Assembly: GCA_051530055.1 (NCBI GenBank)
Contig: CM121342.1
Span: 11,299,480-11,363,479 of the forward strand
Length of the DNA stretch: 64,000 bases
Source: Neoechinorhynchus agilis
Lineage: Eukaryota > Animalia > Acanthocephala
Direction: 5' to 3'
Shown here one piece after another: positions 12,174 to 63,960 of the stretch; positions within the stretch are counted from its first letter, which is position 1; each line of letters begins with the position of its first letter. The translations under genes and the position numbers were made by a program. A model generated the notes under the pieces. That model searched no databases and had not been told where the DNA came from. It was given only the letters and a program-made list of their open reading frames with translations.

Positions 12174-14956
12174 ATGACATCGTACGAATCATCGGCAGTT
12201 TCGGCGGCTCGCGCTGATGATGTGGATGCGATGATGATGCCGGCGAAGATTCGTAGGGTTGGCGACGATGCACCTGCCGTCATATTTGAGGTCGGTTCGA
12301 CCCTTTGTTTCTCTGTCAAGGTTTTGGTCACTGTTCTCTTGTTTTTGTAGGCGTCTGATGAGTTTTATTGTATATTGAACCGACAGGCAGAAATCGAACT
12401 TATATCAGATAATGTAGAAGCTCATTCAGGGCATAAAAGCGACGAGCTCCTTGGTCAATCGGTCTTTCAGCTGATCACGAACGCGTAAGTCCATAGCTCC
12501 TCTTTTTCCACGGGTGCGTGAAGAAAAGGGGAACTGTAGACACATCCGCCCCTCGGAGGCCAATCTTCTTCATTTGACCAGTCTCGTTTTATTCAGATTT
12601 TAAACTCACTGCCAACCGATCCCACAAGTATGCGCACTCGGTTTCTTTTCACACCCCCTCCCCCCACACACAAAAAAATAATGTAGCCAAACAAACCGAT
12701 TTTGATAAATCCTACTTTACTCATACGTTCAATTGTGACGTCTACGTCAAAGATCGAGGCAAGGAAACCTACGTGGTCACTACCACGTCCATTCTGTACC
12801 ATAAAACCATAGGTCAGCAAAAGGGGTTTGCCTTTTCGTGCATTCACTTCGCGCAATTAGATGGAAAGCCGCCCAGTTGGTGCTTACTGATCCTTTTTCG
12901 AAAAGGCATCTTCGATCGCAAACATAATCTTCTCGATACATTGACCGTAGAACAATTCTGTACTCTTATTGACTCCGGACTTGATTACCGGATAGTTGAA
13001 GTGGATACGTCGTGCTCAGTCCATGCCGCCAGCATCTTAATCAATACCAGACTTGCACCATTCAAACCATTCATTTCATGCGTTCATGAGCTTGATCAGC
13101 AGAAAGTGATTGAACACTTTGAAGTAGTGAGGTCTAATCCCAGTATGATTCATAAGGCTGATTAGAGAGAGGCAATCGGTTTTTTCGGGTTGGGAATTCT
13201 CAAAAATCATTGTCCATACAGGCTTGAGACCGCTAACACGAATTCCCTTTACGTCCAAATGAGCAGTCGGTATCGAGAATCAACGAACCAAATACTGTCC
13301 AGTCACACACTAATTCGCCCTGAATCGACGGGTGTTGTTAGAAAGAGAAAATCTCCAAATTCACTTGTTCCTTTGTCCTCAATGCCATATAGGTCAGCTC
13401 CACCGGTAACTTCAACGTGTACATTAACCAAAAATAATACGAGTGCTCAAGATAGGGATATTATGATGGCCAATATATCTCATAAACTCACGATTCAGTC
13501 TTTTAAGGACTTGTTTGAGTCCAAAGATTCTATAGGACCGAAAAGTTTGATTTGCGTGAACACTAGTGCTCAAGAGTCTGCTCGAAGGGATTCAATAAAA
13601 CGTCCATTTCCAAAAGTAGCACTACCTGACATGGACGATGGTCTGATTAAAGAGATTGCGAATACTCAAACTTCAAGTCGAAGTGTTCGTAGTTCTCGAG
13701 AAATTCGAGACTACGTATTTAAACGTTTGGAATTGAAATTTGGAAAGGGTTCGATCGCATCAGCACGAGAAGAACGAAAATTTCGAGCTAAAGCCTCGTC
13801 CTCGTTAATATCAAAGACTCATCAAGTACAGGCCGTCAAGCGTCCCAGTCCATCCCAAGATCATAAAATGGAGAACAAACTGAGGCGCTTCAATAGCAGT
13901 CTTGTCCTTGGTGAGCACGATCAATCGCAAGCAATGACAAGTCTACCGGTGTCATCGACAATGTTCATGCGACCTCTTTTGTCACATCATTTCCAACGTC
14001 CACCTCCTCATCTTCACCAAGCAGCGCCTGTCGTTGTCACTCAGATGATGTATGGAGCTAATATGAGAATGACCGGGGGGACACCTCTTATACGAACTCA
14101 ACCTTGCAGACAGCAATTGATGCAGATGGCGTCTCAGGCTACGCAGGCTTCCGGGATCGAACATATTCAACGTCCTTACCAATACCCGATTATGGTTCAA
14201 AGACCTCAGCAGATGCAGTGTTTGGATCCTTATCAGCAGCGACTTCCAGTCATGCGAACAAACGGAATGTATCCACCTAATCAACAGCAGCAATATATCC
14301 AGAATCCACGAATGCTTCAACCCGGGCCTGTAAATCCACAATACATGATGACGGGAACATCCTCTGTAGGGGCGAATCCTTCTATGGCACCACAGGCATA
14401 TGTACATACGGGCGCGTCGTCGGTGAGACCGATGATGGTTCAGCAGCAGCAACAGACGCAGCAGCCGGTTAGTATCTTAGAGCGAAGGACTTGCGACCTA
14501 TTTTACCTTTAGGTTATTGGTCAACCTCCACATCAGAATCAGCAACAATATTACATGCCAGGGAGTGTCACCATGCATCACCCACAAATGATGCCGCCTC
14601 CTGCTCAACAAATGCAACAGCAGTGGTCCTCACAAAACCAACAGCAGCAGCCAAGAATACAACAAGGTCATTTGCAGCAGCACCAACATTTACTACATCC
14701 ACAACAACAGGCGGCGGCGACTCAGTGGCATCATCAACAGAGATACCTCCAACACCACCATCAGCACTTGGGCACATCAATGCAACCAGTTCCCCCTCCA
14801 CCACCGCAGCATAGAGGTCTTCAACAAAGTCAAGTCGCCCATCACCAACAACAACAGTCAATGTATCAAAATCCACCACAATCCGTTTATGCCCCACAGG
14901 CGACGCCAAACCAACAACCTCCGCCTTCTGCTGGAGGGCACAATGTGTACCAATAA
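12174..14956 (+). CDS. NCOA/SRC(Taiman)-like PAS-A/PAS-B protein with Q/P-rich C-terminus, multi-exon, no bHLH seen
   Basis: Exons read ASDEFYCILNRQAEIELISDNVEAHSGHKSDELLGQSVFQLI, DQSRFIQILNSLP, THTFNCDVYVK (NCOA has SHTFNCRMLVK) and EQFCTLID..., followed by a long Q-rich tail. Canonical introns lie at 12291-12350 and before 14516. Two junctions are unresolved. Confidence 0.65.
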
Positions 14957-15156
14957 AGTTAGAATATATTGTGTATGAATAGCTATCTTTTCTATTTCGA
15001 GGGAATATGGGCGGCACTCTCATGAGTAATCATCGTCTTATAGAACACGCCAATAATCAATTTATAAGATCGATTGGTTTGAAATAAGTGGTTAGTATGC
15101 TCCACGTTTAAAAGTATACGCGCATATCCATTGTTTGTCATTTGTACCAAAATCCG

Positions 15157-15417
15157 TCACTTTCCAGCTGATTGCTTTACATTTCTTGGTGGGCTAGACA
15201 TTTCCATCTTTAGAATCATATAGCCATCTGAGCATTTTTCGTGATTAAAGCGATGAGGGCAAAGTGTACTCTGTATAGCATGTATGATTGGTTCATAGAA
15301 AAACAGACTAAACCTTCTACTTGAATAGAACAAATTGTGTTTTCCAAAATAAACCAAAGCCTTCGCGATGATGCGTCCAGCAGTTAGCTGACCTTTGACA
15401 ATTCTGAGTAGATGCAT
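15157..15417 (-). CDS. Possible terminal exon of an unidentified gene
   Basis: An 86-aa ORF with protein-like composition. I recognise no family and did not resolve upstream exons. Confidence 0.25.
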   Translation of the reverse strand: MHLLRIVKGQLTAGRIIAKALVYFGKHNLFYSSRRFSLFFYEPIIHAIQSTLCPHRFNHEKCSDGYMILKMEMSSPPRNVKQSAGK

Positions 15418-20279: not shown

Positions 20280-20420
20280 TATGTGTTCTTTGGTGACGAG
20301 AAGAATAGATATTGATTTATTAATTCCCAATGTTTAGTCCTTTTCGTCGGAAAAACACTTAAGCAATCTGAAGAAGTCCGACAAATCAATATCTATTCTT
20401 CTCACCACCAAAAAACACAA
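20280..20420. mobile_element. MITE family A (TIR tgtgttctttggtga(c/t)gagaagaat), copy 1
   Basis: Long terminal inverted repeats; related copies at ~47205-47335 and ~54694-54790. Confidence 0.8.
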
Positions 20421-22110: not shown

Positions 22111-25100
22111 ATGGTTTCTAATAGGTCGAATCGGTTCTTAATGCCGAAGTTGAAAATTAGTGGGATATCTTTGGTTATTTGTGTTCTAATTTCGTTTCTT
22201 GTTAAACTGTGTTTCATTCCTTGCTAGTAAGTTTTTGTTTTGTTGTTGTCCTTCTTCATTCATTTTCAAGTAGTCATTCGACGGACCTTGAAGTTCATGG
22301 CCAATGGATGCGGATTACTAAATGTCTGCCTCTTTGTGAATGGTATTCGGACAACTCAACCGTTCATACCCTCGACTACCCTCCCTTATTCGCGTATTTT
22401 GAACGAGCACTCGCTTTTATTGCCGATCACACCTTTTTTGCGATCGATTGCAATAATTTTAAAACCGATAAGCTGTTCATGCGACTCTCAGTCATCGGGA
22501 CGGAATTTGTTTCGATTTTGATAATATTTGCATTCAAGTATCTCTTTAGCCGTAAGCATAAGTGGAATTTCGATGTGAGCTGCACTTTAGGCTCTATAGT
22601 GAAAAAAATAAGTTCAAAAAAATGTTAAATCTTTTGGAGAATGTTTTTTCTCGGGATGGTAGAGCTTTAGAAGATGCTGAATTGAAATATTTCGAGATCG
22701 TAGATTGAGCGAATTAAAGTACGTTTATTTTATTAAGCATATCATCACTTTTAATTGCTTGATTAGTATTATACGTCCGTTCCGCAAATGTTGTTATTTT
22801 CTTTTGGTAGTTTTGCGACCCCGGATTGTATTCCACGCCGGATAACGACGACATTTTCCCAAGGTTTGTCATTGTTTAAGTAAATGTCGGAATTATCCGA
22901 CGTGAAATATCGGGGAAATAAATCATCGGTAAATTTTTGAGTCTTCGGGGTGGCAAAACTAAAAAAAAGAAAGTATCTTTTCTCCCCCTCCCGAAGACTC
23001 TAATCCAAAACGTTGTGATATTTGAACACTTTTTCTCATATTATGGAAATGCAATGTGAGCAATTTCCTTAATTTAATTATTTTCTAAATGCAAATTTAA
23101 GGAAAAAATAGTATTTAGTTAAAAAAATCAACGCATGTTCAGAACAAACACTTAGTATCTCATGTTCAATAACAATTTTGCTATACAAGAAGAAATTGTA
23201 AAAGAAGGCTGAATTCTGCAATTGAGATCTGAACCCCCGAATAGTCCAGATTTTTTTCTTGGTTTTACTTAGCACAAGCACTGCAACATGACATGGTCGC
23301 TAAAAATGATTTAATCAGTAGATCAAGTTTGGTTTTCGAAAATGGACACTTTGGAGAGGGCTATTGTAACAATAAAAAGGAAATCTTTATTTCCGAGCTT
23401 TCGTGTTAAATTGCTTAAACAACGTCGATAAACGCGTACAAGATTGTGCCTCCGAAATATCGGTACCAATAAATTCTTTTAATTTTTCCGCAGTTCTGAT
23501 ACAATCACCACCGTCCGCAAAATCTTAGCTTCTCTCCTTCCTCGGCTGTCGCTAGCAGCATTGCCTCGTTGTACTGCAAGCGCGATATTTTGTCGCTGGA
23601 ATTACTACTATAAAATTTAAAAAGGCCTCATTAACGAATCGCAATGAGGAGCTCTTTTTAATAGGTTATGACTCTTGAAAATCGATCGAACCCAAACGAA
23701 ACTATAGCTATAAATTTTTTATTAATGTGACGAATATTGTGGAACGGAGTTATTATGTCTTACGTTTTCCCAATAAATTTTCTTCGCCTTCACTTAAACA
23801 AAAAAAATCATAATCTTCTTTAGTGAAGAATCTATCTTAATTCCACTTGAATAAACGAACGCACCTTTCATCCAGCATGCTCCTTCTATCCTTCGTTTTC
23901 AATACAAGTTTGATTATTCTCGACGGTAATTTCTTTTATTCGTAAAAATATCATTAGTAAAAATCTTCGTTCTAGGTATTCATTTTCAATACAATACTTT
24001 TCTGTTCACAATCGTAATTCTCGCAATCGATTCAGCCATCCACGTCGGTACAAACTCTAGGTCCAGTAGGTTAAAAAAATCAAATTTAGAGAGATCATGG
24101 GAGAACGGCATTTTTGTTTTCATTGCTTTTAAACTTCAAACACATGTTTTTATCGTATACTCCGGCGTTTTTTATACACCTTACAAGTCCTTTAGTCAAA
24201 CGATTGATCGTTAAAGGTACGAATAAACTCTTTTTATCGAATATTTAGTCTTTTCCAAATAGACGATTGCGCTTCAGCGTTATGCTATGTGTTAAAGATA
24301 GCTGTTTTCGTTTCAATTCCATTTCTAATCTCAATCGGACCGTTTATTGTAAGCAGAAGAGCCTATTGATCATTAGCGCTCATTTGAACTGTTTCTGTTA
24401 ACTTCTCGTTTCAGAATTCTCTACCACAACTATATAACCGTCTATTTCCATTCGAAACGCGAGGATTAACTCATTCATATTGGGCTGCAAATTTCTATTT
24501 GAATCGAGATCTTAAAACTGAGCTTAAAGATCTCTTTTCGTTATGCAATCTACAATACACTTGATCGGATTCTTGTAAAAAGTATGCTATAAGTAGCTGT
24601 TTTTGTTAAATATATATTTTCGATTTAGTTCTTAACCGAACAAATCAACGTCCACGATCTACCGGAGGTCTGGTAACTAACATTGAACATCAAGTATTGC
24701 CAAATCTCACCACGAAGCACACTCTCGCACTTTCACTTGTGCTTCTCGTGCTCGGACTAAAAAGGTTACGACGAAATCAATCAAAAAAATCAAATACGTT
24801 TTTGGTCAACTGCGTCATGTCTGCGTTCACAGTATTTATGACTGGATGGCACGTCCACGAAAAAGCTGTGCTTACCGTGTTGTTGCCCATTATGTGAGTC
24901 TACTTTGAAATTATAGTACCAAATTCTATTAATTTTTTACACGAATTTGCAGTAATTAGAATTGAGTTCGATATAAATATAATGTTTTTTTGTGATAAGA
25001 AAAATACATATTGATTTATTATTTTGTTTGAAGATTGAATTGTTTATGCTTGCATCTGACGTAAAAATTAAAAGGATTTATTAATTTTAATATCTCGGCA

Positions 25101-25180
25101 CAATGTTGTGCCTTTATCAAGATTGTTAAAGCGCTTTATTCGTACTTGTACCTTGTGCCGAAATATTGGAACCAATAAAT
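22111..25180 (+). CDS. ALG8: ALG8 alpha-1,3-glucosyltransferase, multi-exon (3' end uncertain)
   Basis: Motifs YHSTDLEVH, TLDYPPLFAYFE, IHFQYN, NFKH, RLFPFETRGLTHSYWAANF, STGGLV and GWHVHEKAVL. It has several canonical introns plus two non-GT-AG interruptions. Confidence 0.92.
22555..23853 (+). other. Putative non-canonical stem-bounded intron in ALG8 (1299 nt; can slide over a TAA repeat)
   Basis: A perfect 10-bp inverted repeat, AAGTGGAATT (22560-69) / AATTCCACTT (23839-48), sits at the ends. Removal joins FSRK|RTHLSSSMLLL in frame. The nearby GT (phase 1) and AG (phase 2) are incompatible. Confidence 0.7.
22826..22995. mobile_element. Hairpin-rich repeat family B, copy 1
   Basis: cacgccggataacgacgacattttcccaagg...cttcgggg...cccgaagac; copies at ~38330-38480 and ~46053-46232. 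Confidence 0.8.
24497..24542 (+). other. Putative non-canonical 46-nt hairpin intron in ALG8
   Basis: It splits WAANF|YAIYNTLD (human WAPNFWALYNALD). Retention shifts the frame to a stop. There is no usable GT or AG. It is flanked by a TAT repeat and has an internal GAGATCTT/AAGATCTC stem. Confidence 0.85.
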
Positions 25181-26918
25181 ACTTTTAATTTTTATGCCAC
25201 ATGCAAACATTTATTATTCTGAAGGAGGACTACAGACTAAAACTCAGGATAAAGCCACCGTGACCTACCTCTACTTTTTAGACCTGAAGAAATTCAATTT
25301 CATAATGGACGAAATATTGAGAATAATAATAATCAATACCCATTGTTTTTATCACCAAAAAATAAACATATATGAACAATTTCTTTACAAATATAATGTG
25401 ATAATTTTAAAATTAAAAGTTAAAAATATACTTAATTATGTCACGTCTTTTTCCAATCAAATTCACAATTAATGTATCTATGAAAAATTCGATTTTTCTA
25501 GTCTTCTTCGCGGCACTCAAAATTTATACCTGTAATTTAACCGAAAATTTCTCCTTTCATTTTATTACAATGTTCGCTAAATTTGAGAATTATTTCTTAA
25601 TTTTTCAAAAATCTTTGATTAAAATTCGCGAACTCTTTTGTTGCATAAAGTAAAAAATCAAATCGTTCTCACTATTTTTATAAATAATTCACTTGTTGAT
25701 TTAATTGTGCTAAGAGGGTGACGCGATGATTTCTGATTCGCTAGGTTGTTGAATACACTTTGTGATGTAGATTTTTTCCAAGGCTACACCTTCTATATCT
25801 AATAGCATTTTTAGGATTCTAGCACACAAGGATAGCAAATACGCTCGATTATTTTTGATGCTAAATACGTCTGCGACTCTTTCATTTCTTCCTCTATTGT
25901 ATGAACGCGGAGGTAACATACAAAATTATTTTCTTTTTAATAGAGCATTTCTTTAAAAGAATTCTTTATCAAAACAACGCTCGCCATATCGTTCAGCTGT
26001 CTAACGACTGCATTCTTCACTCATCGGTACCAATGTCCACTTGTAGGGTACGTTCTTTTATCGAAAAAATTAATAGAGCTTTCCCTGTCGATTTAGATCA
26101 TCAGGTCTACTATCAAAAAGAGAAGCCTTATTTATTATTGGTATATTTGTGTTAAATATTGCGCTACTCGACCCATGGAGGACATTTGTACACTTTGCAA
26201 ACTTCGAATTCTTGCCACTTCTACTTACTTCGGACTCCCTCGCACTTTTAAACGTTTACGCACTAAAATGCTTTTTAGTCGAATAAATCGTTTCAAAGCT
26301 CAATATGTTCTTGGAATTTTTGCTCTCTTAGTTTTCGCCCTTTTAAATGGAGTCTTGGACGTCGTTAATCTCCACTTTCATTGATTCTGGGGTATTAAGA
26401 CTAGAAAACAAGAATAATAGTAACACGTTAATTGTGGAAAATACAAAAAAGAATAGGAGGACCATGTACCATTGGGTCCTCATAAGCATTCAAATTCACA
26501 ATTGTTCAAAAAAATGCGTATCCGCTAGGATGGTAATATCTGATCGGAGGGATGTCTATTCGGGTGGTAATATCTGATCGGAGGGATGTCTATTCGGGTG
26601 GGACTATCCAGTCGTTGGATGTTCGTTAGGGTGAGAATGTATCCGTTCGTTCATTGTGATTGCTTACAAGTAAGCAATATTTAAATAAAATATTATGTTT
26701 TATCCGATGATCACTGTCATGATGATAAACCCGATGCATCTCTTTTATGAAAGCAGAAATTATAATAGCACGTTTTATCATTGATCAAAGTAGAGGAATC
26801 ATGTACGTAAGAGTTGTTGTGAGTACTCGAATCCTTGAATGCGTTTGTTTATTCTGGAGTGGGAAAATTGATAGTGATTCGCGTCGAGGAGCTTGTGAGG
26901 TTAGGTCTTTTCTCCGAT

Positions 26919-29135
26919 TCATTTATGCGTCTCGATATCCGAAAAGATTGGACAGTGTGGAAAAAAGAGCGGAGGTATAGGAAGGTGCGAGATTGAGGGC
27001 GGACTGTTCATCGATCGAATATCTTCGATCCTCTCCTCATCCGGTTTTATCTGATTATCTTCGAGGATATGCCTCAGAAATTTGACTCTCGGTTGCATAA
27101 ACGAACACTTATCGTTCCTAGCTTTCAAGCCACTATCTTATAACCTTTTTGGGCACTTCTTTAGGATTCTCGAGATGAGATCGGTCATTACTTCCCGTCA
27201 CAATCACATCATCCAAATAGACCGAAACGTTCGGAATTCCATGCAGCAGATTACTCATGTAACGTTGAAAAATAAGTGGGGCGGACGACACTCCATAAGG
27301 TAGTCTGCAGAATTTGTAGTAGCCCATCGGAGTAGATATGGTTAGCAAGGATCGATACTGCGATTCCACAGGCATTTGTAAATACGCCTCTTTCAGATCG
27401 ATTGTGGAATATTTCTGTCCATCGGCAATTTGATACATTGCCTCCTCAAAAGTTGGCATCATGTATGCGTTGGTTGTCAAATGTGGATTGATGGTTGCGC
27501 GAAAATCTCCGCATAATCGTATACCTCCGTTTCGCTTCTTGACCACTACTATCGGAGTCGCCCATTCTATTGTTTTCTTTGAAGCGTCCACCGGTTCCAG
27601 AATTTCTGCTTCTACCATTCGATTGGTCTCTTGACTTATACCTTCTCGAAGCATCACGGGTATTCGCCTCGACGGTATACACTTCGGTGTTGCTTCGGGC
27701 CAGACAAATAATTTCGCCGGGAAAATTTTAATACGCCCTGTTCCCGGCCCGAACAAATCTTTCATCTTTATTAGCAGCTCATCCAACCCGTCAATCTTAG
27801 CATTGTTCGTGATCTGTGATATCGACACTTCCTTCGGTCATATTAAATCGAAAGCCGCTATCCGCGGCCGTCCAAACAATGGATGATCAGTACCATCGAA
27901 ACCACAACTGATAGTTCTTTGAGAATGTTGTTGAGCCCAACGCGGACCATGCATTCACCTTTAGTGCTGATTGTTCCGCCTCCGTAGGTGCGAAGATTGC
28001 TCCTCTTTTGCAAACACGGGGCACCAATTTGTCGCCATCATCGTTCTGGTAATATCGAGATGGCTGCGCCGGTGCCGTATTCCATTGGAACCGATTTTCC
28101 ATTTATCTCTGAAACGATCATCGGCCTGCCACCACTTTTTTCGATTTCATGGACGCCGGTTTCATGATCCGCAGATATATTAGCGATACTCATCTGATCT
28201 ACTTGCCATACTCGGCTACGACAGCATCGCTTGATGTGTCCCTTTCGCTTGCATTTGTGGCAAATGAAATTTTTCGCCCAACATTCTTTACTGCTTGTAT
28301 AATAAGGCCCTCCTCATCTTCCACAACGCAGGTCACTACTTAATCTTCGTTCCATCTCGCGTTTGCTCGTTCCTATTCGATCAACTTTGGCACATAATTC
28401 TTCACGTACTTCATTATCACTACTGTCCCTGGTCAATATCGTCATTGTCCTTTCGGCTGTCTCGTAGGTCGTAGCTACCTTAAGGACCTGATCGAATTCA
28501 AGTCTGAGAATCTGCGTCCTAATTCCTTCGAATGCGATATTCAGTATGAGGAGATCTCACAGTCTATCCTAAATCGCTTCGTTTTCCGTAATTGTTGATT
28601 TTGGGTGAAATTGGCAGGTATTGGCGATTCCACGGGCCTCCGGCATCCATTGCACGTGATTTTGGTCGGATCCCATCTTACATTGTGCAAACGCATATCT
28701 AGCCGCTACCACATGAATTGGTCTCTGATAGTGGTTAGTAAGGGCGGACACTATATTTGCGTAAGTGGTAGAGCTTGATTTGAAATCTTTAATAATTTTT
28801 CCTATCAGTTGAAACGTCTTCGGTCCACTCCATGCTAGTAGATGAGCTTTCTTGTTATTTTCCTCTATGCCATAAGCGCCAAAATGTTGTTCCAGTTGTC
28901 CCACGAAGTCGGACCATGTCTCATCTTCGTATACGAATCGTCGAAATTGCGGAATCAATCTCTGACTGGATTGTTTATGCTCCTTCATTTCTAGTTGTTT
29001 TTGCAAATCGCGATTCCTTGATTGTTCTTCTCGCAACATTTCCATCATCTCCTTCAACACATCCGCTTTGTCCTCGTCGCCAATTGTTAGATGCTTCATA
29101 ACCGTTTTTATTATTTTTATGAACCGCACCCCCAC
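26919..29135 (-). mobile_element. Ty3/gypsy LTR retrotransposon remnant (gag, protease, RT), truncated and frameshifted
   Basis: Gag-like ORF 28569-29135, protease-like GTGAAISILP near 28060, and RT with WATPIVVVKK, RLCGDFR, YSTIDLKEAYLQ and YLDD. No integrase or paired LTRs seen. Confidence 0.9.
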
Positions 29136-38308: not shown

Positions 38309-38753
38309 ATATATTTTTTTTAATGTGTTGGATTATTGTCTTCGGGAGGGGGAGAAAAGATACTTTCTTTTTCTCAGTTTTGCCAATCTGAAGATTCAAA
38401 AATTCACCGATGATTTATTTCCCCGATATTTCACGTCGGATAATTCCGACATTTTCCCAAGGTTTGTCATTGCTTGTAAGTCATTTCTTGAGTGTGTTTA
38501 CGTGGTGGATTGTTTTTAAACGGATTGAGTGCTTTTGGATTCTAGATAAGTACTTATAATTTTGACGAGAAACGTCCTGGATGAGTATTTTATCAGAGTT
38601 CGTTAAGATTTGGTTATACCTTTGCGTATTTGCCCTCTTGCACACTGCATAAAAAGATGGAGCGTTTAGAGAGTAGGAGTCTTTTCGTAAACGTCGTCTA
38701 AAAACCGCGCATTCCTAACCTAAAGCAACTATCTCCTCTCTTTTTTATAGACG

Positions 38754-45753: not shown

Positions 45754-46915
45754 TCACTCACCTCGTCTGTCGCGATACCATCCCTGTTGCACATCTCCGT
45801 CATTTGGACTTGATCTTCGGGACGTTCGCCTTCGGTGACTGCGTCGATGTCGCTCCTCGTCCGAAGAATCCATTGATCGGGACCGGTGGCGCACTTCCTC
45901 GAACAAAGTGTACCGCATTTGCCCGCTGATTGGTTTGAGATGCATGAAATTATCCGAAATGGAGGCCCATAAAGTGTACATAATTCATATCAATACACGA
46001 AAAATGAATTTTTTTGGTAGTTTGGCCAACTAGGATTAAAAAATTCACTTATTTCCGATATTTCACGCCGGATAACGACGACATTTTCCCAAGGTTTGTC
46101 ACTGTTTAACTAAATGTCGGAATTATCTGGCGTGAAATATCGAGGAAATAAATTAGTTGAACTGTTGAATCTTCGGGGTGGAAAAACTATAAAAAAAGTA
46201 TCTTTTCTCCCCTCCCGAAGACAATAATCCAACACATCAAAAAATGATTTTTTTAAATCTGAATGATAAGCCAGAATAATAGAAATGCAGACAAGGTGAG
46301 AGGATGATTGCTGGGGCGTTGATTTGATTCTTTTACCAAAAATCTAAAATAAATCATTTCAGGCTTAAAACCCGGCTGGAAAGGTAGGCCACCATTTTCA
46401 TTACAGAATCCACCTCGAGGGCATTCCCCCATTTGATATTGTCGGCAGCAGGCTTCATGAAAATCAGTCACCGGACTAAGTTCGGCATAGACAGGTCGTC
46501 CGTCAAACCATCGATTATTAAGTTCATCAACGGCCTTTTGGGCATCCTTCTCATATCTGAATTTTACGTAGCAGTTTCCAGCCAAATGCTCACTGAGGTT
46601 ATCACAAATGTTCATTTCCTCAATGGTTCCATACTTGCGTTCCAATTCAAGGAAGATCTCTTCAAATGTCTCATCGAAATGCTTTTGGATCTTTTCATCG
46701 GTTAAATCGTCCTCGGCTAGACTTTTGTCGGCCAAAGCGCTGTTATTTACCGGATTCAAATACACATTTTTTAGAAGAACAGTCTGACTAAACGTTGGTT
46801 TGTTGTGTAGCTTCGAGCAGCGCTCACCGTGCCGGCAAGCGCCTACTTTGAAGTAAAATGAGCAGTTAACCTTGTCTTTTTCTGTGCCGAAAATCGACGC
46901 AAGATAATCCGCCAT
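45754..46915 (-). CDS. U2AF1: U2AF35 small subunit of U2 auxiliary factor (3' exon uncertain)
   Basis: MADYLASIFGTEKDKVNCSFYFKVGACRHG, the UHM domain, ACCRQYQMGECPRGGFC|NFMHLKPIS and an RS-rich tail. Confidence 0.96.
45952..46402 (-). other. Putative non-canonical intron in U2AF1 (451 nt)
   Basis: On the sense strand it reads tgT|AATGAAAATGG...CCATTTCGGAT|Aat. It splits the invariant GGFC|NFMH of ZnF2. There is no AG in the open stretch upstream of exon 2. Confidence 0.85.
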
Positions 46916-49674: not shown

Positions 49675-50230
49675 TTGCAAATTGCCGTTTAACGCTAATC
49701 CGTGTCAATGCGTTTAAGTAAAAAGTACACTACTGATTATTCCGCCTGCGAATTAACCTTGTTTCAACTAAATCATATCGATTTTTATGTTTATTTCTTT
49801 TCAATAGTGGAAATTCAAATGCCGACACATATGAAAACTTTTTAAGTTCAAAAGGTTTTATTTCCAGCGATGCTCCATTGCATAATCCACCAGCAGAATC
49901 TCCGTGGAAAGCAGTTGAATTTCGATTGATGATTGTCGTTAAATTTATTAACTTCGTTAGGTTGAAAGAGTCAAATCACGGAATGTTTAAAGAATATCTG
50001 AATGAAACTGAGTCCGCTGGTTGAATCGGACCAAAGTATTGAAACGCTCTTTCACTTGAGACCAGAGATTGAAATTTTTATAACTGAAAAATCGATTCAT
50101 TTTCCCGACCTTAAGGATTCATTGTGGCCCTGGGTTTTACTAATTTTATGCCATTTAACGGCATATTTGTACGAGCTTCAAGGCAAAAGTAAAGTTACTC
50201 AAAGCCTTCTCCCTAAACTTCAAAAGCCGA

Positions 50231-51760
50231 GTGGTTTACCCCTTCAACAGCAATTCAGCCATCCTTCCCGGTTACTTTTCCTTCCATACATACCGCGATG
50301 ACCGTCCAGGAGGGGAGGTCTCAATTTACGTACGACAATCGCTACATTACTCATTATCTCTAACAGTCTCTCTACAAAACCCCGATATAGAATTCATCAC
50401 AGTCCACTTCTCAGCTCCTCCAAGAAATGGCCTTGGAGAATTTACGATTGCTGGCGTTTATCGCCCTCCTGCCTCTCGCCCTGAGCCCTCTCTACATCAA
50501 CTTGGTTCCATGAAAGAGCTCATAAACTCCACAAATTAACACCATTTCTTAATTGCAGGGGACTTCAATAAACTATTTCCTCTTCTACCCTTCTCCGAGT
50601 TGCGTCTACTTATTGACTTCCCAACTCGTCTTGACGCTCACCTTGACAAAGTGTTCACCAACATCGACATCCACTCATCCGCCCCGCGAACTCTGACCAT
50701 TTTTCTGCCCTTCACCCCACCTGAGCGTATAAAATCTTCCTTTTACCCGTCTGGGATAAACGAGATCATAACTTTTACACTTTCAAAAAAAATCAATTCT
50801 ATTATTCACACCCTCCACTCGGATAACACAAATGACCCTTTCGTGGCCATGTCCTCTATAACCTCAACCATGGACTCGGTGGACAATTCATTCCTTCGCC
50901 AGGCCTTCTCCGATTTCGATCTAAACTCGTGGCAGATCAACTGGCTCGAAATTTATATTCACAATCGCAAACAATACATTCACTGCCGTTCTACCTCCTC
51001 TATCAGCCTACCCCTCACCAAAAACGTACTTCAAGGTTCTTTGCTGTCACCACTTTCTATTATTTTCCTAAACGACCTCTCTCCTCTAACTCATCATCAT
51101 CCATTCACCACCCCACCTCTCCCTTTCTTTAACCTCTAACGAAATCACACACATAAACGACTTCTGCAACAATCACAAACCACCTGAATTTCTCTAAAAT
51201 TTTCGAAATGATCCCTTAATTCTTTCGAAACCCTGTCCTCCCCCGAGCTTCTAAATGACATCCTACGAGTCACCTTCCTAAGAATTCGGAGTCTCCAATT
51301 TTAATTAAACTTGAAGTGGGACTAGCACATCACTCTCTCCCTCAAGCTCAATACCTTCAAAAATTATCTCTTCAAACATCTCCGACATTTAAGAATCCTT
51401 TCGCCCGATCTCTACAAATTTTACTTCAGTTTATTTTACCCTCCCTCACCTACGGTTATTCCGTATTTTGCAACCTATCAAAATCTCAAATCCGTCGTCT
51501 TGAAGTGTTTCATAAAAGAAAATCTATAATTTGCACAATTGACTTTCCCCCTCTCACCGAATGCCTTGATGCTATTTTCATAAAACAAACAAAACGCCTC
51601 TCAACCCTACCACCACAATTTCTTCCACATATCGCTCCCTTTTCACACGAGCACAACACTCGTAATCCTAATTCGTTTCATCCTCTCTCGACATCGCACC
51701 TCCCTATACCTATGCTCCTTTTTCCATGCTGCCCAATCTTTTCGGATATCATTACCTGAA
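50231..51760 (+). mobile_element. Degraded CR1/L2-like LINE (APE endonuclease and RT fragments)
   Basis: IAGVYRPP, IAGDFN, RLDAHLDKVFTN, LQGSLLSPL and FILPSLTYG, with internal deletions. Confidence 0.85.
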
Positions 51761-51995
51761 ATGAACTTGAGGAAAGACCCAAGCTCACAAGCTCGCCTGC
51801 AAACAATAAGCGTCAATCCTCAATCGAGCGGACATTTCCCGACCGAACCCTTAATCCACTCCAAAACAAAAACCGCATTAATTGAACAAATCTGATGAGG
51901 ACCCAAAGGTACATGCGTTTCATTGCTTTTTGATTAAGAAATGAACGCCAGACTATAGTCACAAATGTCACATATAATTCACTATCAAGGAAATT

Positions 51996-52220
51996 TTATT
52001 TTTTCATAATTTTTAAAAATTCATCGAAATTTAATCGATGATCTCCATCAATATCAGCCTTCGCCATCATCTTACATACATCTTTCTTTGTGAATTTTTC
52101 TCCCATTTCCTTTGCACCTAGTCGAAGTTCATTAGGTGTGATGAAACCATCTTTGTTTGTGTCGCATAGATTAAAGGCAAATTTAATCATTTCCAATTCC
52201 TCTTTACCAACTTTTTGCAT
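51996..52220 (-). CDS. Calmodulin-like two-EF-hand protein (74 aa)
   Basis: EF loops DTNKDGFITPNE and DIDGDHRLNFDE; a probable 5'UTR intron lies upstream (gtgagt donor at ~52336). Confidence 0.85.
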   Translation of the reverse strand: MQKVGKEELEMIKFAFNLCDTNKDGFITPNELRLGAKEMGEKFTKKDVCKMMAKADIDGDHRLNFDEFLKIMKK

Positions 52221-52686: not shown

Positions 52687-53373
52687 TTACATGGGATATC
52701 TACCTCCGTATCCTGCACCAGGATAGCCGCTATTCATTGACGGTTGCCCATAACCTCCACCACCATACATCGGCGGTTGTCCATAGCCTCCACCTCCGTA
52801 TTGCGGTTGTCCGTAGCCTCCACCACCGTACATTGGTGGTTGCCCATAACCTCCACCACCGTACATCGGCGGTTGTCCAGAGCCTCCACCCCCGTATCGC
52901 GGTGGTCCATATCCACCTCCTCCTCCGTACATCGGCGGTTGTCCAGAGCCTCCACCCCCGTATCGCGGTGGTCCATATCCACCTCCTCCTCCGTACATCG
53001 GCGGTTGTCCAGAGCCTCCACCCCCGTATCGCGGTGGTCCATATCCACCTCCTCCTCCGTACATCGGCGGTTGTCCAGAGCCTCCACCCCCGTATCGCGG
53101 TGGTCCATATCCACCTCCTCCTCCGTACATCGGCGGTTGTCCAGAGCCTCCACCCCCGTATCGCGGTGGTCCATATCCACCTCCTCCTCCGTACATCGGC
53201 GGTTGTCCAGAGCCTCCACCACCGTACATGGGCGGTTGTCCATAGCCTCCACCTCCATATCGCGGAGGTCCATAGCCTCCACCTCCGTACATCGGCGGTT
53301 GTCCATATCCACCTTCTCCTCCAAACGGCAAGTTACCACCCAAGCCCTGAAGAACATTTTGCAGGAAATCCAT
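52687..53373 (-). CDS. Gly/Tyr/Pro-rich tandem-repeat protein (66-nt unit [22 protein letters not shown])
   Basis: About 5 near-identical 66-nt units plus shorter variants. The Gly-rich frame is the only protein-like one. The true N-terminus may lie in an upstream exon. Confidence 0.75.
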
Positions 53374-54289
53374 TCCCAAGAATTAAATGTGATAATGATG
53401 TAAAACAAGAGAGGATTTTTCTTATGAACTTTATAAATGACTCAAAACGCGTACATCGCTCATGCGTGAAAATTTTTACAACCGAACTACTTTCTTTTAA
53501 AATATGTTGTCATGATAGTTTAGTCGACTCACTTTATACGCAGTTGTGAACTTTTTGAGCAACGAATTCGAATTATATAATTTTGGCCGTGTTCACAAAT
53601 ATCAATGCCATTTAATAAGGTCAATCAGTCGTGGATGGCTGGTAATTGAAATTTATCAGTTCAAAAAATAAGACTGAAATGAAGCTCAAATAATAAATTT
53701 TGAACGATTAAGCGCGAGACGTTTAATTTTTAAATGAGCGAAATGAAGACTACAAGTGAGCTGATGTACGCTAGCATGTGAACTTGTTGCGTGCGAAACT
53801 ATGAACTACGCTTTTAGTATCTTTTCCATTGTTAACTTAAAGAGATGTATATATTCACCTTTTTCAGATTCTTCTAATAAAAAAGAATGGCCTTGGAGGC
53901 TAAGTGTGTAAATTTCGCTTAGGTGTTCTTCAAAGGGTTTCACTATTTCCACTAAGGATCAAAATTAAATATTGTTTAGTAGAAACTCACTGTGAAAGCT
54001 TGGTTATATCTAACGACCAATCAAGATAAATGATTATCGTTTTTACTATCATTAAAAAGCCACACACCTCATTGTAAGTAAAAACTTCTTAAGCACCTAA
54101 AAATCAGTCTGGGTCTTCATTTACTACGCAAATGTTTGTGTGGCAGTTGGTCGCACGAAAACGAAAATGATTTTGATAGAATTCGCTCTGGCGAGGACGA
54201 ACATTTTATTGGTTAGAGGATAACTAAATTAGATGAAGCTAACAAGTAAAATAAAAACACAGTATGTTTAGAAATACCAAGAAAAAGAA

Positions 54290-55420
54290 CGTCTTGCATG
54301 ATTTGCGTGGGCGATGAGCGCATGTCTGCCAGGGTATCTTAGTTTATTAAAAAGGTCAAATTATCAGTTTGGATGTCCAATAAGATACAGAAATTAAAAG
54401 TGATGATCAAATCAATAGACTTCAGAATAAATGGACCTAAATCAATATGATTTTGACGACTAACAAAATAATACGAAATGACGAATCGGGAAAAGGACTA
54501 TGTATATTGTTCACATTTTCGTTAGCTGTGCTCATTCTGATATTGTGCTCGTATTTTGTGCCCTAATTTCAATTTGAAAATGCGGTTTCCAAATGAGCAA
54601 GTCAATACAAAATCCTCGCAGAAACATTACAGAATTTGATTAAAAGATAACTGCAAGAAAGATTCATAAATTATAGTTTAGGTATGTTATTGTTTTTATG
54701 TGTGTTCTTTGGTGATGATAAAAATCGATATTGATTTATTAATTCTCAATGTTTCGTCCGTCTCGTCGGACTTCTTCAGGTTGTGTTCGAAGAAAAATAC
54801 AAGTAAGTTTTACCCGAGAGGGATCTTTAAATTCAAATAAATATTTCGGCTAAACTCACGACGTGATTGTTCATTATCGTCTTAATTGAGCAATAGCTTT
54901 CCAGGGGATGGCAACGCTGCTTTGAATTAAAAAAATTCGATCCCACAACGAAAATAAAAGTTACAAAGTCGCTCGAATTACGGCTATCAATTTTAATTTT
55001 ATAATAAACAATCGATTACGTCACGAATGTATAGGCTAAAATTTACGTAATCGGAGGCTATAAGAAATTCGACTTTCGTGATACAATCAAATTCTTATCA
55101 TCAAAATCAAACTCATAGCCTTTGATTACGTAATTTTTGCCAATGCGTTCGTGACGTCATCGATTGTTCATTATAAAATTCGACCTCATTGCCGTCATTT
55201 GGACTATGTAAACGAGTTGGTCATTCGTCGTGCATGAAGTGCACTTCTTCAATGGCAGTTGAGATTAGAAAGTATGACTGGCAATGCTTCGATTGTAAGA
55301 CCTGCTCAAGGTGCGGAAAAGCTGGGTGCGATGATCAACTTCTGTTCTGCGATCGATGCGATAAAGGCCATTATACGTACTGTCTGGAACCTAAGCTTAC
55401 CCATGCTTTAAAAGACGAAT
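54290..55420 (+). CDS. DPF/PHF10-like double PHD finger gene (partial, possibly a pseudogene)
   Basis: CKRVGHSSC...KYDWQCFDCKTCSRCGKAGCDDQLLFCDRCDKGHYTYCL, with CMICVGDE upstream. The upstream junctions need non-canonical introns and a 1-nt frameshift. Confidence 0.7.
54967..55204. mobile_element. Palindromic MITE family C; second copy/arm at ~56060-56186
   Basis: The arms gtcgctcgaattacggcta...ttataat and attataaaatt...catagccgccattcgagcgac are mutually inverted. Confidence 0.65.
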
Positions 55421-56864
55421 GTATGTGTGCGAAGTCATTCGCGCGACCATCGGCTGTGGAATTTAATTAGAAATTAAATATTTAAAAAAAACAATTTGAT
55501 GCCGTCACAAAAGGTCCGTAAAAAATCCGACAACCGTCGGCTGTAAGATTAAATTCCATATTGAAAAATGAAACTGCTCATGATTGTTGTGTAGTGGCGA
55601 CATCAAAATCATGGTTCGCGGTGACTTACGCATTGACAGAGTAATCATGGAGGCCATAATAATTCGATAATCAAAAACGGTGGAAGGCAACAAAGCGGAT
55701 CACGTTTTATAGATGAGAGTCGTGTAAATGTTCTCGTAACCTTTCATGTCTTTATAAAGGCTCTGGATTCAGCCGAAATATCGATTCAATGAATTTACAT
55801 AATTTTTGTCGCCACTACACAGCAATTAAATTCCATCTCGACATTTCGAAGACGTCACTGAAGTATATTTTGCAATTGTAAACCAAAAACCGGGTATGAG
55901 ACAAAACGTTTGATTACTTCACTAACCTATAGTAGGTAAATAAATTAGGCAACCGTCGGCTGTAAGATTAAATTCCATCTCGACATTTCGATGACGTCAC
56001 CTGTATTCAGGTTGCAAAAGCCACGAAAACACCGACTGGGAAATTAAATTACATCATAAAAATTGGATAACGTCACGAAAGTCGAACTTCTCATAGCCTT
56101 CGATTACGTCACTTTCTTACCTATGAGTTCGTAACACCATCGAATTTTTATTATAAAATTCAAACTCATAGCCGCCATTCGAGCGACTTTTCAACCATAA
56201 TGCGGGTGCTTACTTAATTTTGTTTAATTTATTTCTTGAACATGAAAAACGTTTCCATCGGCCTTTGTAGCATCTTCGAATTCACATTTCGGTTCCGACG
56301 ACCATCAAAAAGTGTCGTTATTTGAAATTCGATCAAAGAAAGCATTAATGTCTAGGCGCGAAGCACACGCAAAGGTGGATCTACGCGATATTCGGTCGGG
56401 AATTTTAGTTTTCACCAAAACGGATTCGGGTATTTGGAGCAAAGCAGTCTTGTTTCAATTAAATCAGATCGATTTTTATGCTCATTTCTTTTCAATAGTG
56501 GAAATTCAAATGCCGACACATATGAAAACTTTTTAAGTTCAAAAGGTTTTATTTCCAGTGATGCTCCATTGCATAATCCACCAGCAGAATCTCCGTGGAA
56601 AGCAGTTGAATTTCGATTGATGATTGTCGTTAAATTTATTAACTTCGTTAGGTTGAAAGAGTCAAATCACGGAAGGTTAAAAGAATATCTGAATGAAACT
56701 GAGTCCGCTGGTTGAATCGGACCAAAGTATTAAAACATGCATCAAACGAAGGACTAGTTGTCGGAAATCAATTTTCTCGTTTTATACGTCAACCGCATTT
56801 ATAGGCACATCATTGATAATTTCGTGGAATATAAGTAAAGGTAGCCAGTAATGAACCAAGAAGT

Positions 56865-59390
56865 GTGGTCCAGAAGCCAGTCGTTTTACCGAACCTTCGA
56901 TCATTTCGAGGTGGATTTATTATAGAGAATATGGTTGATGCATTGCACCATCAAATGGTGAAGATTGATTCCGATGTTGGATGTTCGAATGCAATAATAT
57001 CGATAAACGCAGCAACCAAATTAAATCGAAATGATGAGAGCAAGACGCTACAAATACTCCGGTCGAAGCACCCATGTAGTAGCGGAAGTTTTGAAATTCC
57101 ATCTCCTCCCATACAAGACTGGACGCCCACTCAAATTTCAGAGTTACAAAAGGCCATCTCATCTTTTGCAAATGGTTCGGGTCACGGGCTTGACGGACTA
57201 AGGCCTCAGCACCTAAAGGACATGATGTCCTTTTCAACTGGTGAAGCAGCTCTCTCTCTAGGAAGTGCGCTATCTCGGTTAGTTGACCGCCTGACTGGAG
57301 AGGACCTGAACCACGTTGCAAAGGACCTATTTTTCGGAGCATCATTATGTGCCCTCAGAAAAAATAAGGCGGGATTCGTCCCATCGCCGTATCCTCGGCG
57401 ATACGCCGACTTGCAGGAAAAATTCTCTGTAAACGTATTACAGAGAAAACCGGACAGCAACTTCGTCCAGTCCAACTGGGCTGATGCACATCCTGCGGGC
57501 GGAAACTATTGTCCACTCGCTCCGAAACTTTGCTATGAGAAGCTCAGAGCTGTGCGTGATTCTTAAGTGTGATTTTCAGAACGCCTTTAACTCTCTCAAT
57601 GGAGAAGCCATGTTCTGCGCAATCAGGGATCATGCCCCAGAAGCCTTCCAGTATTTTCTCAATGCCTACGGGACGGCGACTCCTTTGCTTTTCGAAGACC
57701 ACCTCATTTGGTCCGAAAGAGGAGTGTAGCAAGGAGATCCCCTCGGTCCAATCGCATTCTCACTAACAGTAAATCCAATAGCGCATTCTCTCCATTCCAG
57801 CTTTAACGCTTGGTACTTGAATGACGCTACGCTCGGAGGTGATCCCTCCGTTGTACTGCGCGATTTGGAGACGCTGATTAGGGAGACCTCGAAGATGGGC
57901 ATTGAGCTCAATGCTGGAAAATGTGAGCTCCTTGTATTGAATATTGGAGACGCCGCCAAAGTCAAAGAACTAATGGCTGGGTTCGAGGCCGTAGCTCCAG
58001 GTCTGAAACTCGTGACTCGGGAACAACTCAGCCTCCTGGGCAGTTGCGTCTTCGATTCAAATGTGGAAGATGAGATCGGCCATATCATACCGAAACTTTC
58101 GTTGCTGTGCGATAGGGTGTGCGCTCTCTCGGCTCATGAAGCCTTGTTTCTCATAAAGAACGCGCTCTTCATCCCCAAATTATTGTACAAGGTTCGCACA
58201 GCAACATTTTTCAAACATAAGGAAGGATTGGCTAAGCTCGACGGCAAGGTGAGGGCTTGTCTCGAGCGTATTTTAAATGTCCAGCTCTCAGATGAGGCGT
58301 GGCGACAAGCTTCTTTGCCTGTGTCATCTGGGGGATTGGGGATTCGGGCACTAGTGGACCTTGCTTTGCCGGCCTTTCTTGGATCGTTTGATGGGAGCCT
58401 AACAGTATCGAAGAAAATTTTGAAGGAAAAGTTCTGCCTTGACCGGGATTTCATGGTGACGGTTGAGGAATGGTGCCAGCAGACAGGCGCTAACCATGTT
58501 CCCGTGAATGGTCTCAGACAGTCGACCTGGGACGGACCTCTTGTCGCGAGAGCTCACAGCTCTCTACTTTCAGGTTCTCGCGATGGGGTCGTCCGAGCTA
58601 GACTGTTGGCAGTTTCAACACGAAAATCTGGGGCGTGGTTGGAGGATGTTCCTCTGGCATCAGTGGGAACTCTTCTTACTGATGAGGTAACGAGGATCGC
58701 AGTATCCTTAAGACTCGGTCTCCCGATATGCACGCCCCATCGCTGTCGATGTGGGTCTTTGGTTGATGCTTTCGGGCGACACGGTCTCGTCTGCAGAAGG
58801 TCAGGAGGAAGGTTATCACGCCATTCTGAAATCAATAACGCAATTTCTCGGGCGTTGAGAACGGCGAACTTCCCGAACATCCTGGAACCCGGAACCCGCA
58901 AACCTTTGTCGACTAGACGGCCGTAGGTCCGATGGAATTTCGGTCTTCTCGTGTCGGGAGGGCAAATGCCTTCTTGGGGACGCCACGTGTGTGGACACCC
59001 TCGCAGCCAGCAACATCCGCTACTCCCTCGAAATCGCCGGTGGTGCCGCCAGTGCAGCGGAAGGGAGGAAAATACGCAAATATATTCAGTTATCGAGGGC
59101 TCACTATTTTGTTCCCTTTGAGGTAGAGACGTATGGAGCGCTCGCAGCTCGGCACTCTCTCTGCTCCAGGATCTCTCGAAGAAATTGAGAAAGGCAACCG
59201 GAGACTCAAGAGCAGGTGTATTCCTTCGACAAAATATCTCGCTGGCAGTACAACGAGGCAATGCTGCCAGCGTGATGGCGACGGTCGAGGAAGGACAAAA
59301 GCTGGAATTTGGCGGGAGGTGGTGAGTGTGCTTCAAACAGATTGTTTGAATTGTTAAAAATATATTATGTTTTCAAAAAAAATCGACAGC
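56865..59390 (+). mobile_element. CRE-like non-LTR retrotransposon (RT, CCHC zinc motif, PD-(D/E)xK endonuclease), inactivated
   Basis: GLDGLRPQHLKD, DFQNAFNS, GV*QGDPLGP, WYLNDATLGG, GGLGIR, CRCG..VDAFGRHGLVC, RHSEIN, QRGN-type C-terminus and an A-rich tail, with stops and frameshifts. Confidence 0.88.
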
Positions 59391-62350: not shown

Positions 62351-62759
62351 TAAAGAGCATCCTTTTTATCTTGTCAATCATGGATCGCTTGCAATTAAGA
62401 AGAGATTTTTGTATGAAATAAAATGAATATTACAAGCAGATAATTTGAAATGGTCAATTTTATTTTCTGATTAAATGCGATTTTTTACCTTCGTTTATTG
62501 GAACATACAGTTATAGAATTTTTCATTTGGATATTAATTCGACTAAGTAATTTATCGGAAATCGTTGTTGTCAAAGCACATACTGATCAATATTCTAAAA
62601 GAATTATTTATCGGAAATCGTCGTTGTCAAAGCGTATACTGGTCAATATTTTAAAACAATTTTATATTTCATGTCTATCTTATTTTTATCGGAATTAAAT
62701 ACTCTTGTTTCTCAATAACCCCTCGGATCTTCGAACCAATGGAGCATCGAAGTAAACGG

Positions 62760-63960
62760 CTGATCCATAAATCCGCCTACTGTATCCTCGTCAGGAGGCC
62801 GAGTAGGCAACATTTCTACAGTGTTTTTGCTAGGATACACAAACACAATTCTTAGTTTGCCCCCTCGTCCAGGATTTGAAAAATCAGGTTTGATTGTAAC
62901 ATTTAGAATTACATGCTATAAAATAGTTATCGCAGACGATGATGAATCGCACGCATCGGTATAAACTCGGAAACGCTCCATAGAATCTCTTGGCAGACAA
63001 GTGGAGCGTGTTATGTGAACCTAACGAATATTAGATTTTGGCAGTTTACGACCTTTCATCGAAATGGCGTTATCCACAAAAGATTTTGGATCAAGAATAC
63101 CAAACCCAAAATAATTACTTACCCAATATCCAGCTCCATTTTTCCACCATCCTTCGTGCATAGACCGATGAACTATCATATTTGCGTGCTTAACGGACGA
63201 CACTTGACTTCTTTCTTCAAATTTGTTCAAAGCTCACTGGAGCGGAACAGAAAATACTTACTAATTTGTTATCTACGGTGATAAGTAGTACCGATAACAA
63301 GACGGATAAACTGAACTATTGGTTAAAAGGCGAAACATGTGAACTAGTTCAGATGGAAGGATGCACAAAATTTACAATTACAAAAAGGCTGCAGAGATGA
63401 GATTTCTTATGGCACCGCGTCTTCTGTTTGCGTAATCGGGATAAGAAGTAGATTCGAAAAGAAATTTCCATTAATTTCACGGGATGCTTTAACCTTTCAA
63501 ATTGTTCCGGATTTGAATGATGAGACGAACTCTGCACAAGGTTCGTCTGAGCAATATTTGGAGGGATCGAGAGCTTTTGAAACTAACAAGAAGCGAGTTG
63601 TCAAGAAAACCAAAAAATACTACAATGAAAAATCACCGAAAAAATATTTTGATCGTTTAGATCACCAATCGGCTAAAAAAGGTGATCAGGAATATACTGA
63701 AAACGGCTGATGTGCAATTGAAATCTTCATTACACGTACCAATTATACCCGCAGTTATTCGATTTGAAGATTCATCGCTTGTATAACTAGTTTTCAGCGT
63801 AGTACGGCGATGTATGGTTTTTTAGAATACCAGCCACTGCAATCGCGTAATGGGAATTCACTCGTCCATCGGCGGCACAATTATCAAACAAGTGACCACC
63901 ATTACCAGAGGCCATAACTAAGGAAGATCCTAATCCATTGCGTCCCACCCGTGTATTATT
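62760..63960 (-). CDS. Furin/PCSK-like subtilisin proprotein convertase, partial and divergent (5' part outside the window)
   Basis: GRNGLGSSLVMASGNGG...CAADGRVNS..SPYYAEN|CTS and GWWKNGAGYWVSNYFGFGILD match the furin catalytic domain C-terminal half. Middle exons are unresolved. Confidence 0.7.

Follow-up and report, generated by a model that had tools for sequence, protein, structure and literature searches.

Candidate stem- and repeat-bounded non-canonical introns in conserved genes of the acanthocephalan Neoechinorhynchus agilis

Conserved genes in a 64,000-nt stretch of the N. agilis genome (assembly GCA_051530055.1, CM121342.1; hereafter the window, to whose positions all coordinates refer) are interrupted by five segments with paired ends, which we consider, with a probability of roughly 60%, to be transposon-derived non-canonical introns that are removed from RNA. 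The segments lie in U2AF1, ALG8 (two segments), TNPO3 and a Kv channel gene. As judged from homologous proteins, the non-GT-AG status is firm for the U2AF1 segment and the 46-nt ALG8 segment and probable for the 1299-nt ALG8 segment and the Kv segment; the splice route of TNPO3 is undecided between the predicted junction and a GT-AG pair. The original prediction proposed a minority class of introns derived from miniature inverted-repeat transposable elements (MITEs) beside normal introns. This interpretation is favored by the direct repeats, the inverted-repeat ends, the lack of GT-AG borders, and the short GT-AG introns that adjoin the segments in the same genes. The claim of a non-GT-AG class holds for two of the five segments, which are necessarily non-canonical, and is overstated for the other three, which have in-frame GT-AG pairs.

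Ends and stems of the five segments

All five interruptions are present where they had been predicted, and the 7-mers quoted for their ends are exact on both sides. The range of 46-1299 nt given for their lengths is reproduced by values of 451 nt (U2AF1), 46 and 1299 nt (ALG8), 777 nt (TNPO3), and 703 nt (Kv). The defining features are listed below.

45952-46402, minus strand: U2AF1 interruption (451 nt), flanked by codons ...GGA TTC TGT and AAT TTC ATG CAT
46400-46403, minus strand: left copy of the TAAT direct repeat; right copy at 45949-45952
46387-46399, minus strand: U2AF1 5' stem arm GAAAATGGTGGCC, pairing with GGCCTCCATTTC at 45956-45967 (-17.7 kcal/mol, p = 0.001)
22143-26262, plus strand: ALG8 gene, with the start codon and first intron read by eye
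22227-22270, 23926-23975, 24044-24089, 24217-24262, 24349-24414, 24582-24628, 24894-25814, and 25913-26104: the eight canonical GT-AG introns of ALG8 (44-66 nt, 192 nt, and 921 nt)
24497-24542, plus strand: small ALG8 interruption, 46 nt; TAT repeat at 24496-24498 and 24542-24544
22555-23853, plus strand: large ALG8 interruption, 1299 nt; TAA repeat at 22553-22555 and 23852-23854
22560-22569: large ALG8 stem arm AAGTGGAATT, pairing with AATTCCACTT at 23839-23848
30992-31768, plus strand: TNPO3 interruption, 777 nt; TA repeat at 30991-30992 and 31768-31769
31000-31006: TNPO3 stem arm CGATCTT, pairing with AAGATCG at 31754-31760
44457-45159, plus strand: Kv channel interruption, 703 nt, shortly before the pore helix; lacks a direct repeat, its ends forming a perfect 7-nt terminal inverted repeat (ATGTCAA/TTGACAT)
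46009-46236, strand not given: copy of a ~230-nt interspersed repeat nested in the U2AF1 interruption
about 22800-23011: second copy of this repeat, inside the large ALG8 interruption
38316-38475: third copy, just after a stop codon (3' untranslated region or intergenic)

Direct repeats of TAAT (U2AF1), TAT (46-nt ALG8), TAA (1299-nt ALG8), and TA (TNPO3) mark the boundaries of four segments. Each of these can be cut as T^A...T^A, the caret marking the junction, as had been claimed for four of the five; Kv is the exception. In this register (unique in the case of Kv) the first base is A and the last base is T in every segment, and the 5' dinucleotides are AA, AT, AA, AC, and AT. The subterminal stems comprise 7-13 bp and begin 0-8 nt inside the segment ends.

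The predicted base-pairing of the two ends is borne out in all five segments by comparing the duplex of the first and last 20 nt with 4924 TA-TA pairs drawn at random from the window at matching spacing. The end duplexes reach -17.7, -13.6, -14.4, -12.8, and -11.0 kcal/mol, against a mean of -4.8 kcal/mol (sd 2.8) for the random pairs, with empirical p values of 0.001, 0.008, 0.005, 0.012, and 0.030 that combine to ~3e-7 (Fisher's method, by hand). The corresponding duplexes of seven canonical ALG8 introns range from -0.9 to -7.1 kcal/mol. The whole 46-nt segment folds from end to end into one hairpin (-10.9 kcal/mol, z = -2.2). Of four short canonical ALG8 introns that were folded, three show next to no structure (0 to -2.5 kcal/mol), and the fourth (24349-24414) reaches -13.1 kcal/mol with an unremarkable z of -1.1.

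The combination of TA...TA borders, a stem, and a restored open reading frame (ORF) is not by itself diagnostic for finding cases blind, as this rule returns 1302 pairs in the window at <= -12.8 kcal/mol. A scan of the window for the motif pair AA[TA]CG ... CG[AT]TT yielded noise, and an Rfam search of the window gave zero matches. The statement that conservation lies in the geometry and not in the sequence goes too far, since AATCG is common to three of the five segments at +6..+10; AA(A/G)TGG occurs in two, both motifs being read from the 5' ends. Neither are the interiors quite unrelated, as the U2AF1 and large ALG8 segments have the ~230-nt repeat in common at 87% identity. The copies of this repeat diverge by 8-15%, and these two segments are therefore probably not brand-new insertions.

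Junctions and canonical alternatives

Each junction was compared with homologues and with all GT-AG or GC-AG pairs that keep the frame and lie no more than 45-60 nt from either boundary. The U2AF1 and 46-nt ALG8 cases are firm because the segments split invariant motifs and no canonical pair keeps the motif. Excision of the U2AF1 segment yields ...GGFC^NFMHLKPIS..., the same as in the acanthocephalan Pomphorhynchus laevis and in all other U2AF1. In P. laevis, the gene consists of one uninterrupted ORF of 774 nt that reads ...CPRGGFCNFMHLKPIS... (locus L001:2697-3470), and DNA similarity between the window and P. laevis ends exactly at 46400; taken together, these fix the junction to the nucleotide. 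The TAAT repeat allows five cut registers (TA..GA, AA..AT, AT..TA, TG..AA, and GA..AT), none of which is GT-AG, GC-AG, or AT-AC, and all in-frame GT-AG or GC-AG alternatives delete the last His of zinc finger 2 along with 19 conserved residues. The protein with the segment deleted is 88% identical overall to P. laevis GJ496_007865, with 173 of the first 179 residues shared. Upstream of the segment, the nonsynonymous divergence (dN) from P. laevis is 0.045, with synonymous sites saturated; 3' of the segment, a 65-codon frame stays open and its start is conserved. The downstream part of the P. laevis locus is transposon sequence and hence uninformative, and no synteny with the window was seen around the P. 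laevis gene.

The 46-nt segment separates F from Y in RGLTHSYWAANF^YAIYN (YWAANF^YAIYN), the most conserved block of the ALG8 family, in which the motif at this site is RGLxHxYWA(A/P)NF^(W/Y)A(I/L)YN. The coordinates of the profile hidden Markov model (HMM) run from 272 to 272 across the segment. No in-frame GT-AG pair near the boundaries removes it, and the sole GC-AG option replaces AANF at a cost of 12.3 bits. For this segment and that of U2AF1, no register conforms to U2-type GT-AG or GC-AG borders, and no register at homology-fixed junctions has the ATATCC or terminal AC of U12-type introns. The ALG8 model with both segments removed, scored from 22224 on, comprises 442 aa with no stop and reaches 353.7 bits against the ALG8 profile.

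The prediction that removal restores conserved motifs holds for these two segments and varies in force for the others. Removal of the 1299-nt ALG8 segment leaves the protein collinear with its family (HMM 123 to 126), although the site falls in a variable loop, and the GT-AG pair 22561/23876 lies only 5.8 bits below the predicted junction. No ALG8 was found for P. laevis or rotifers, nor within 10 kb upstream of P. laevis TNPO3. In the Kv channel, the protein joined at the predicted junction reads ...STSMGDGIWFALVTMTTVGYG; its pore helix is better than that obtained via GT-AG 44487/45176, and it scores 83.6 versus 79.1 bits for Ion_trans and 54.3 versus 46.0 for Ion_trans_2. Homology thus prefers the predicted junctions of the 1299-nt ALG8 and Kv segments over in-frame GT-AG by 4.5-8 bits.

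In TNPO3, the GT-AG pair 30976/31751 (removing 30977-31750) is as acceptable as the predicted junction against the human protein, to which both align continuously; against P. laevis, it scores 2 bits lower. A search of a representative library provided one useful TNPO3 relative. The P. laevis gene has a continuous exon at the interruption site (first exon L003:6001-7035), followed by a canonical GTAAGT. This P. laevis intron follows ...KHYD (L003:7035, WNNJ02002804.1), a position at which the window gene is continuous, and the deposited 356-aa P. laevis TNPO3 is a truncated model that reads through the GTAAGT donor to a stop. The comparison of sites with P. laevis covered U2AF1 and TNPO3; the segments are absent from P. 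laevis at both, so these intron positions, for which a comparison with relatives had been proposed, are lineage-specific with respect to that species.

Host-gene integrity and competing explanations

The TA repeats and inverted repeats indicate a transposon origin. Small elements with terminal inverted repeats would have entered coding exons where the target contained TA, and the target would have been duplicated on insertion; removing the element with one copy of the repeat and keeping the other would then restore the pre-mRNA, while the subterminal stem would bring both junctions together. Removal at the RNA level and a cut at the repeat boundary are both probable. In the large ALG8, TNPO3, and Kv cases, which are ambiguous, insertion of a transposon into an exon is well supported by the direct and inverted repeats, the in-frame empty site, and, for TNPO3, the lack of an intron at this site in P. 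laevis; the transcripts may nevertheless use cryptic GT-AG sites.

The N. agilis genome comprises 46.2 Mb in three major scaffolds (N50 16.4 Mb, whole-genome shotgun project JBMGUZ), and the assembly DNA came mostly from a pool of 50 worms (PMC12690905). Direct and inverted repeats are also what disruptive transposon insertions would leave, in which case the copies in the window would be pseudogenes, decaying duplicates, or deleterious alleles with the function supplied elsewhere. Such a scenario could draw on the lineage-specificity of two insertions relative to P. laevis and on the frame breaks of a furin-like locus at 63.0-64.0 kb, as not all genes of the window are clean. However, U2AF1, ALG8, TNPO3, and Kv have no frameshifts or stops outside the segments, and the ALG8 splice sites are preserved. 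The proposed check for intact paralogues revealed no second U2AF1 from the N. agilis assembly among 2899 matches in the protein collection, in which the window ORF forms a singleton cluster. In addition, five exon insertions in ~25 kb of essential genes would scale to thousands per genome, which is not viable, and the pooling of 50 worms means that the interrupted forms are majority alleles. With the P. laevis sites empty and the nested repeats diverged as well, broken copies are unlikely.

Alternatively, the insertions are real and the ordinary spliceosome removes them at cryptic GT-AG sites, so that their non-canonical look would come from misplaced junctions. Tc1 elements in worms and Ds elements in maize are known to be spliced out via cryptic sites, donors starting with GTC are present elsewhere in the genome, and the in-frame pairs 22561/23876, 30976/31751, and 44487/45176 could provide a GT-AG route for the large ALG8, TNPO3, and Kv segments, respectively. 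Homology speaks against it by the 4.5-8 bits noted for large ALG8 and Kv, and the route is closed to the other two segments: every option in U2AF1 loses the zinc-finger His and 19 conserved residues, and in the 46-nt ALG8 segment only the GC-AG pair that destroys AANF is available. As an explanation of the five segments, it is doubtful. Precise DNA excision in expressing cells, as with the internal eliminated sequences of ciliates (TA-bounded, with one TA kept), would account for the TA boundaries in four of five segments, the symmetrical ends, the lengths of 46 nt to 1.3 kb, and the interruption of coding sequence. Germ cells, however, require U2AF1 and ALG8, which favors removal from RNA rather than DNA. 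Five differing end sequences would have to be recognized, the Paramecium end consensus TAYAGYNR is absent from the segment ends, the assembly shows a single form, and precise DNA elimination is not known in animals; excision of this kind is highly improbable. Scarcely credible is an origin in chimeric or hairpin reads or mis-joins. Although the assembly is a hybrid of Illumina and Oxford Nanopore (ONT) data made with MaSuRCA with little HiFi data (PMC12690905), and some frame breaks, as in the furin-like locus, could be indel errors, the clean direct and inverted repeats, found independently at five sites, the nested interspersed repeats, and the exact restoration of the frame are hallmarks of real insertions and not of assembly errors. 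Reading of the sequences, with no dedicated computation, also led to rejection of a bulge-helix-bulge (tRNA-endonuclease) motif, as no exon-exon helix flanks the stem, and of IRE1-type loops, stwintron-type two-step splicing, and translational bypass.

Several observations weigh against transposon-derived non-canonical introns as an explanation of the segments. In-frame GT-AG alternatives exist for three of them. No segment has whole-element similarity or belongs to a multi-copy family within the 64-kb window, and the outermost 3-7 nt are mostly non-complementary, unlike the ends of fresh MITEs, with complementarity reaching the termini only in Kv. The nested repeat could have arrived with the element, which would weaken the argument from age. 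Finally, the U2AF1 sequence looks conventional, and the protein-collection matches include no divergent U2AF1 paralogue of the kind present in the tunicate Fritillaria borealis.

Removal could be the work of a U2 spliceosome that tolerates such ends, as is the case in Fritillaria, or of a non-spliceosomal activity guided by structure, which is suspected in euglenids. Compatible with the spliceosome are the A...T ends, which match the AG/AT class of Fritillaria, and the length of 46 nt, at which the small ALG8 segment equals the shortest canonical introns in size. Closer to the euglenid and Amoebophrya systems are the symmetrical ends and the absence, apart from the stem, of any 5' or 3' consensus. 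It is conceivable, if rather unlikely, that this animal runs a euglenid-like non-spliceosomal RNA excision and ligation pathway beside splicing, cutting at the base of the terminal stem and rejoining at the short direct repeat. Were this true, TA-inserting transposons could colonize the coding exons of essential genes.

Known systems and other features of the window

Published descriptions of transposon-derived introns bounded by stems and repeats have so far been limited to a tunicate and a few protists, and no report of such introns in Acanthocephala was found in the searchable literature; the word 'intron' is absent from PMC12690905, PMC12256650, and the P. laevis genome paper PMC7310846. 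One of the closest parallels is provided by the introner elements of the protist Amoebophrya, a dinoflagellate parasite (PMC7789003), with non-GT-AG ends, coexisting canonical introns, variable sequence, and a parasitic host. In Amoebophrya, an inverted repeat of 8-20 nt joins the intron ends and direct repeats of 3-5 nt overlap the boundaries (PMC7789003). The stems described here (7-13 bp, -11 to -17.7 kcal/mol) agree with the former feature, and TAAT, TAT, and TAA agree with the latter; TNPO3 has only TA, and Kv has none. At the level of genomic sequence, the architecture is an almost point-for-point match. In contrast, more than 60% of Amoebophrya introns are non-canonical and occur in repeated families with RNA-seq support (PMC7789003), whereas the N. 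agilis segments, as seen in genomic sequence, form a minority class (about 2-5 of ~17 introns examined) with no families within 64 kb.

The nonconventional introns of euglenids (PMC11282704, PMC12501133) share a pyrimidine^purine step (Y^R) at either junction, which is T^A in four of the five present segments, as well as a subterminal stem that joins the ends, repeats resembling target-site duplications, sizes of tens to thousands of nt, and residence in the same genes as conventional introns. Their stems center on +4..+6/-8..-6 and often consist of CAG/CTG; here the position and sequence of the stems differ, and the lineage is animal. The euglenid introns are excised as full-length circles, later than the conventional introns, by a machinery that is unknown (PMC11282704, PMC12501133).

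For Fritillaria borealis, the published account (PMC13326754; Henriet et al. 2019 via PMC11282704) describes an animal with introns of MITE origin that have terminal inverted repeats, target-site duplications, and lineage-specific positions, and that are removed by the U2 spliceosome. Its AG/AT class, a large one, begins with A and ends with T, as do the present segments. According to the same account, the termini are AG/AC or AG/AT, the 5' dinucleotide being mostly AG; a YAY triplet precedes the 5' site and another makes up the final three bases, 95% of introns are non-canonical, and U2AF subunits are duplicated. In N. agilis, by contrast, the second base is not constant (A, T, A/G, C, T), canonical introns dominate, and one conventional U2AF1 was seen; the YAY and AG-start signature is lacking, YAY (TAT/TAT) being confined to the 46-nt ALG8 segment. 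Tc1/mariner-type MITEs resemble the segments in the TA at both flanks (four of five), the inverted-repeat ends, and the lack of coding capacity, and differ from them in the outermost nucleotides and the multi-copy families mentioned above. The internal eliminated sequences of ciliates share the TA boundary but not the TAYAGYNR consensus.

Confirmation would extend transposon-derived non-canonical introns to a second animal lineage and, for the first time, to a protostome; they would have arisen independently of those in Fritillaria and would be more like the protist systems. The small genome (46 Mb) and the presence of both intron kinds in the same genes would make it convenient for studying how junctions are chosen without GT-AG. 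Gene finders restricted to GT-AG would truncate such genes, as illustrated by the ORF-called U2AF1 product of the window, which runs straight into the interruption. BUSCO scores of the N. agilis transcriptome exceed those of the genome (metazoa 54.9% versus 47.1%; eukaryota 71.0% versus 58.4%) at a genome k-mer completeness of 96% (PMC12690905). This gap is a weak hint of gene models broken by introns invisible to GT-AG-only finders, and the reported 'massive loss' of conserved acanthocephalan genes could, if such introns are confirmed, partly be an annotation artefact.

Weaker candidates had also been proposed in a PAS gene, SLC30A9, DPF, and furin, and those in PAS, DPF, and furin could not be substantiated. 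In SLC30A9, none was located in the part read, and the introns between 42136 and 42724 are canonical. The PAS-gene candidate, a 27-nt A...T segment at 13137-13163, is equally explained by a 36-nt GT-AG intron at 13132-13167; an in-frame TAG at 13163-13165, which must be removed by either option, parts two long same-frame ORFs, and Pfam detects no PAS domain in this gene at E <= 0.01. The furin candidate was rejected, as the locus has frame breaks instead of clean interruptions. This furin/kexin-like protease locus (63000-64000, minus strand) runs off the window. Furin residues 172-225 are well matched by positions 63790-63993, but the region of the catalytic Ser can hardly be recognized, and two apparent frame shifts part the homologous pieces; the locus could be a pseudogene, a diverged pseudo-protease, or a product of ONT-assembly indel errors.

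The PHD-finger exon of DPF is bracketed by two inverted foldback copies of ~240 nt (54960-55199 and 56014-56195) with the TA-flanked terminal inverted repeat TATAAT(A/G)AACAATCGAT.ACGTCACGAA, and a bona fide TA-flanked foldback element lies at about 54976-55199. The CKRVGHSSC frame of DPF opens only at 55177, with no AG between 55119 and 55228. A non-AG acceptor is possible for this exon, though a canonical GTAAGT donor is located at 54804.

Elsewhere in the window, a tandem array at 8770-11462 consists of 10.1 copies of a 267-bp unit with 92% matches; an open frame of ~83-88 aa recurs in every unit but probably does not represent a gene. Long retroelement-like (reverse-transcriptase-type) ORFs, recognized by eye, occur at 27136-28313 (minus strand), 50159-51892 (plus strand), and 56835-59372 (both strands), and the window is therefore repeat-rich despite the small genome. 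A 231-aa ORF of Gly/Tyr/Pro-rich repeats at 52690-53382 (minus strand) is adjoined by a small single-exon gene with two EF-hands at 51999-52220 (minus strand).

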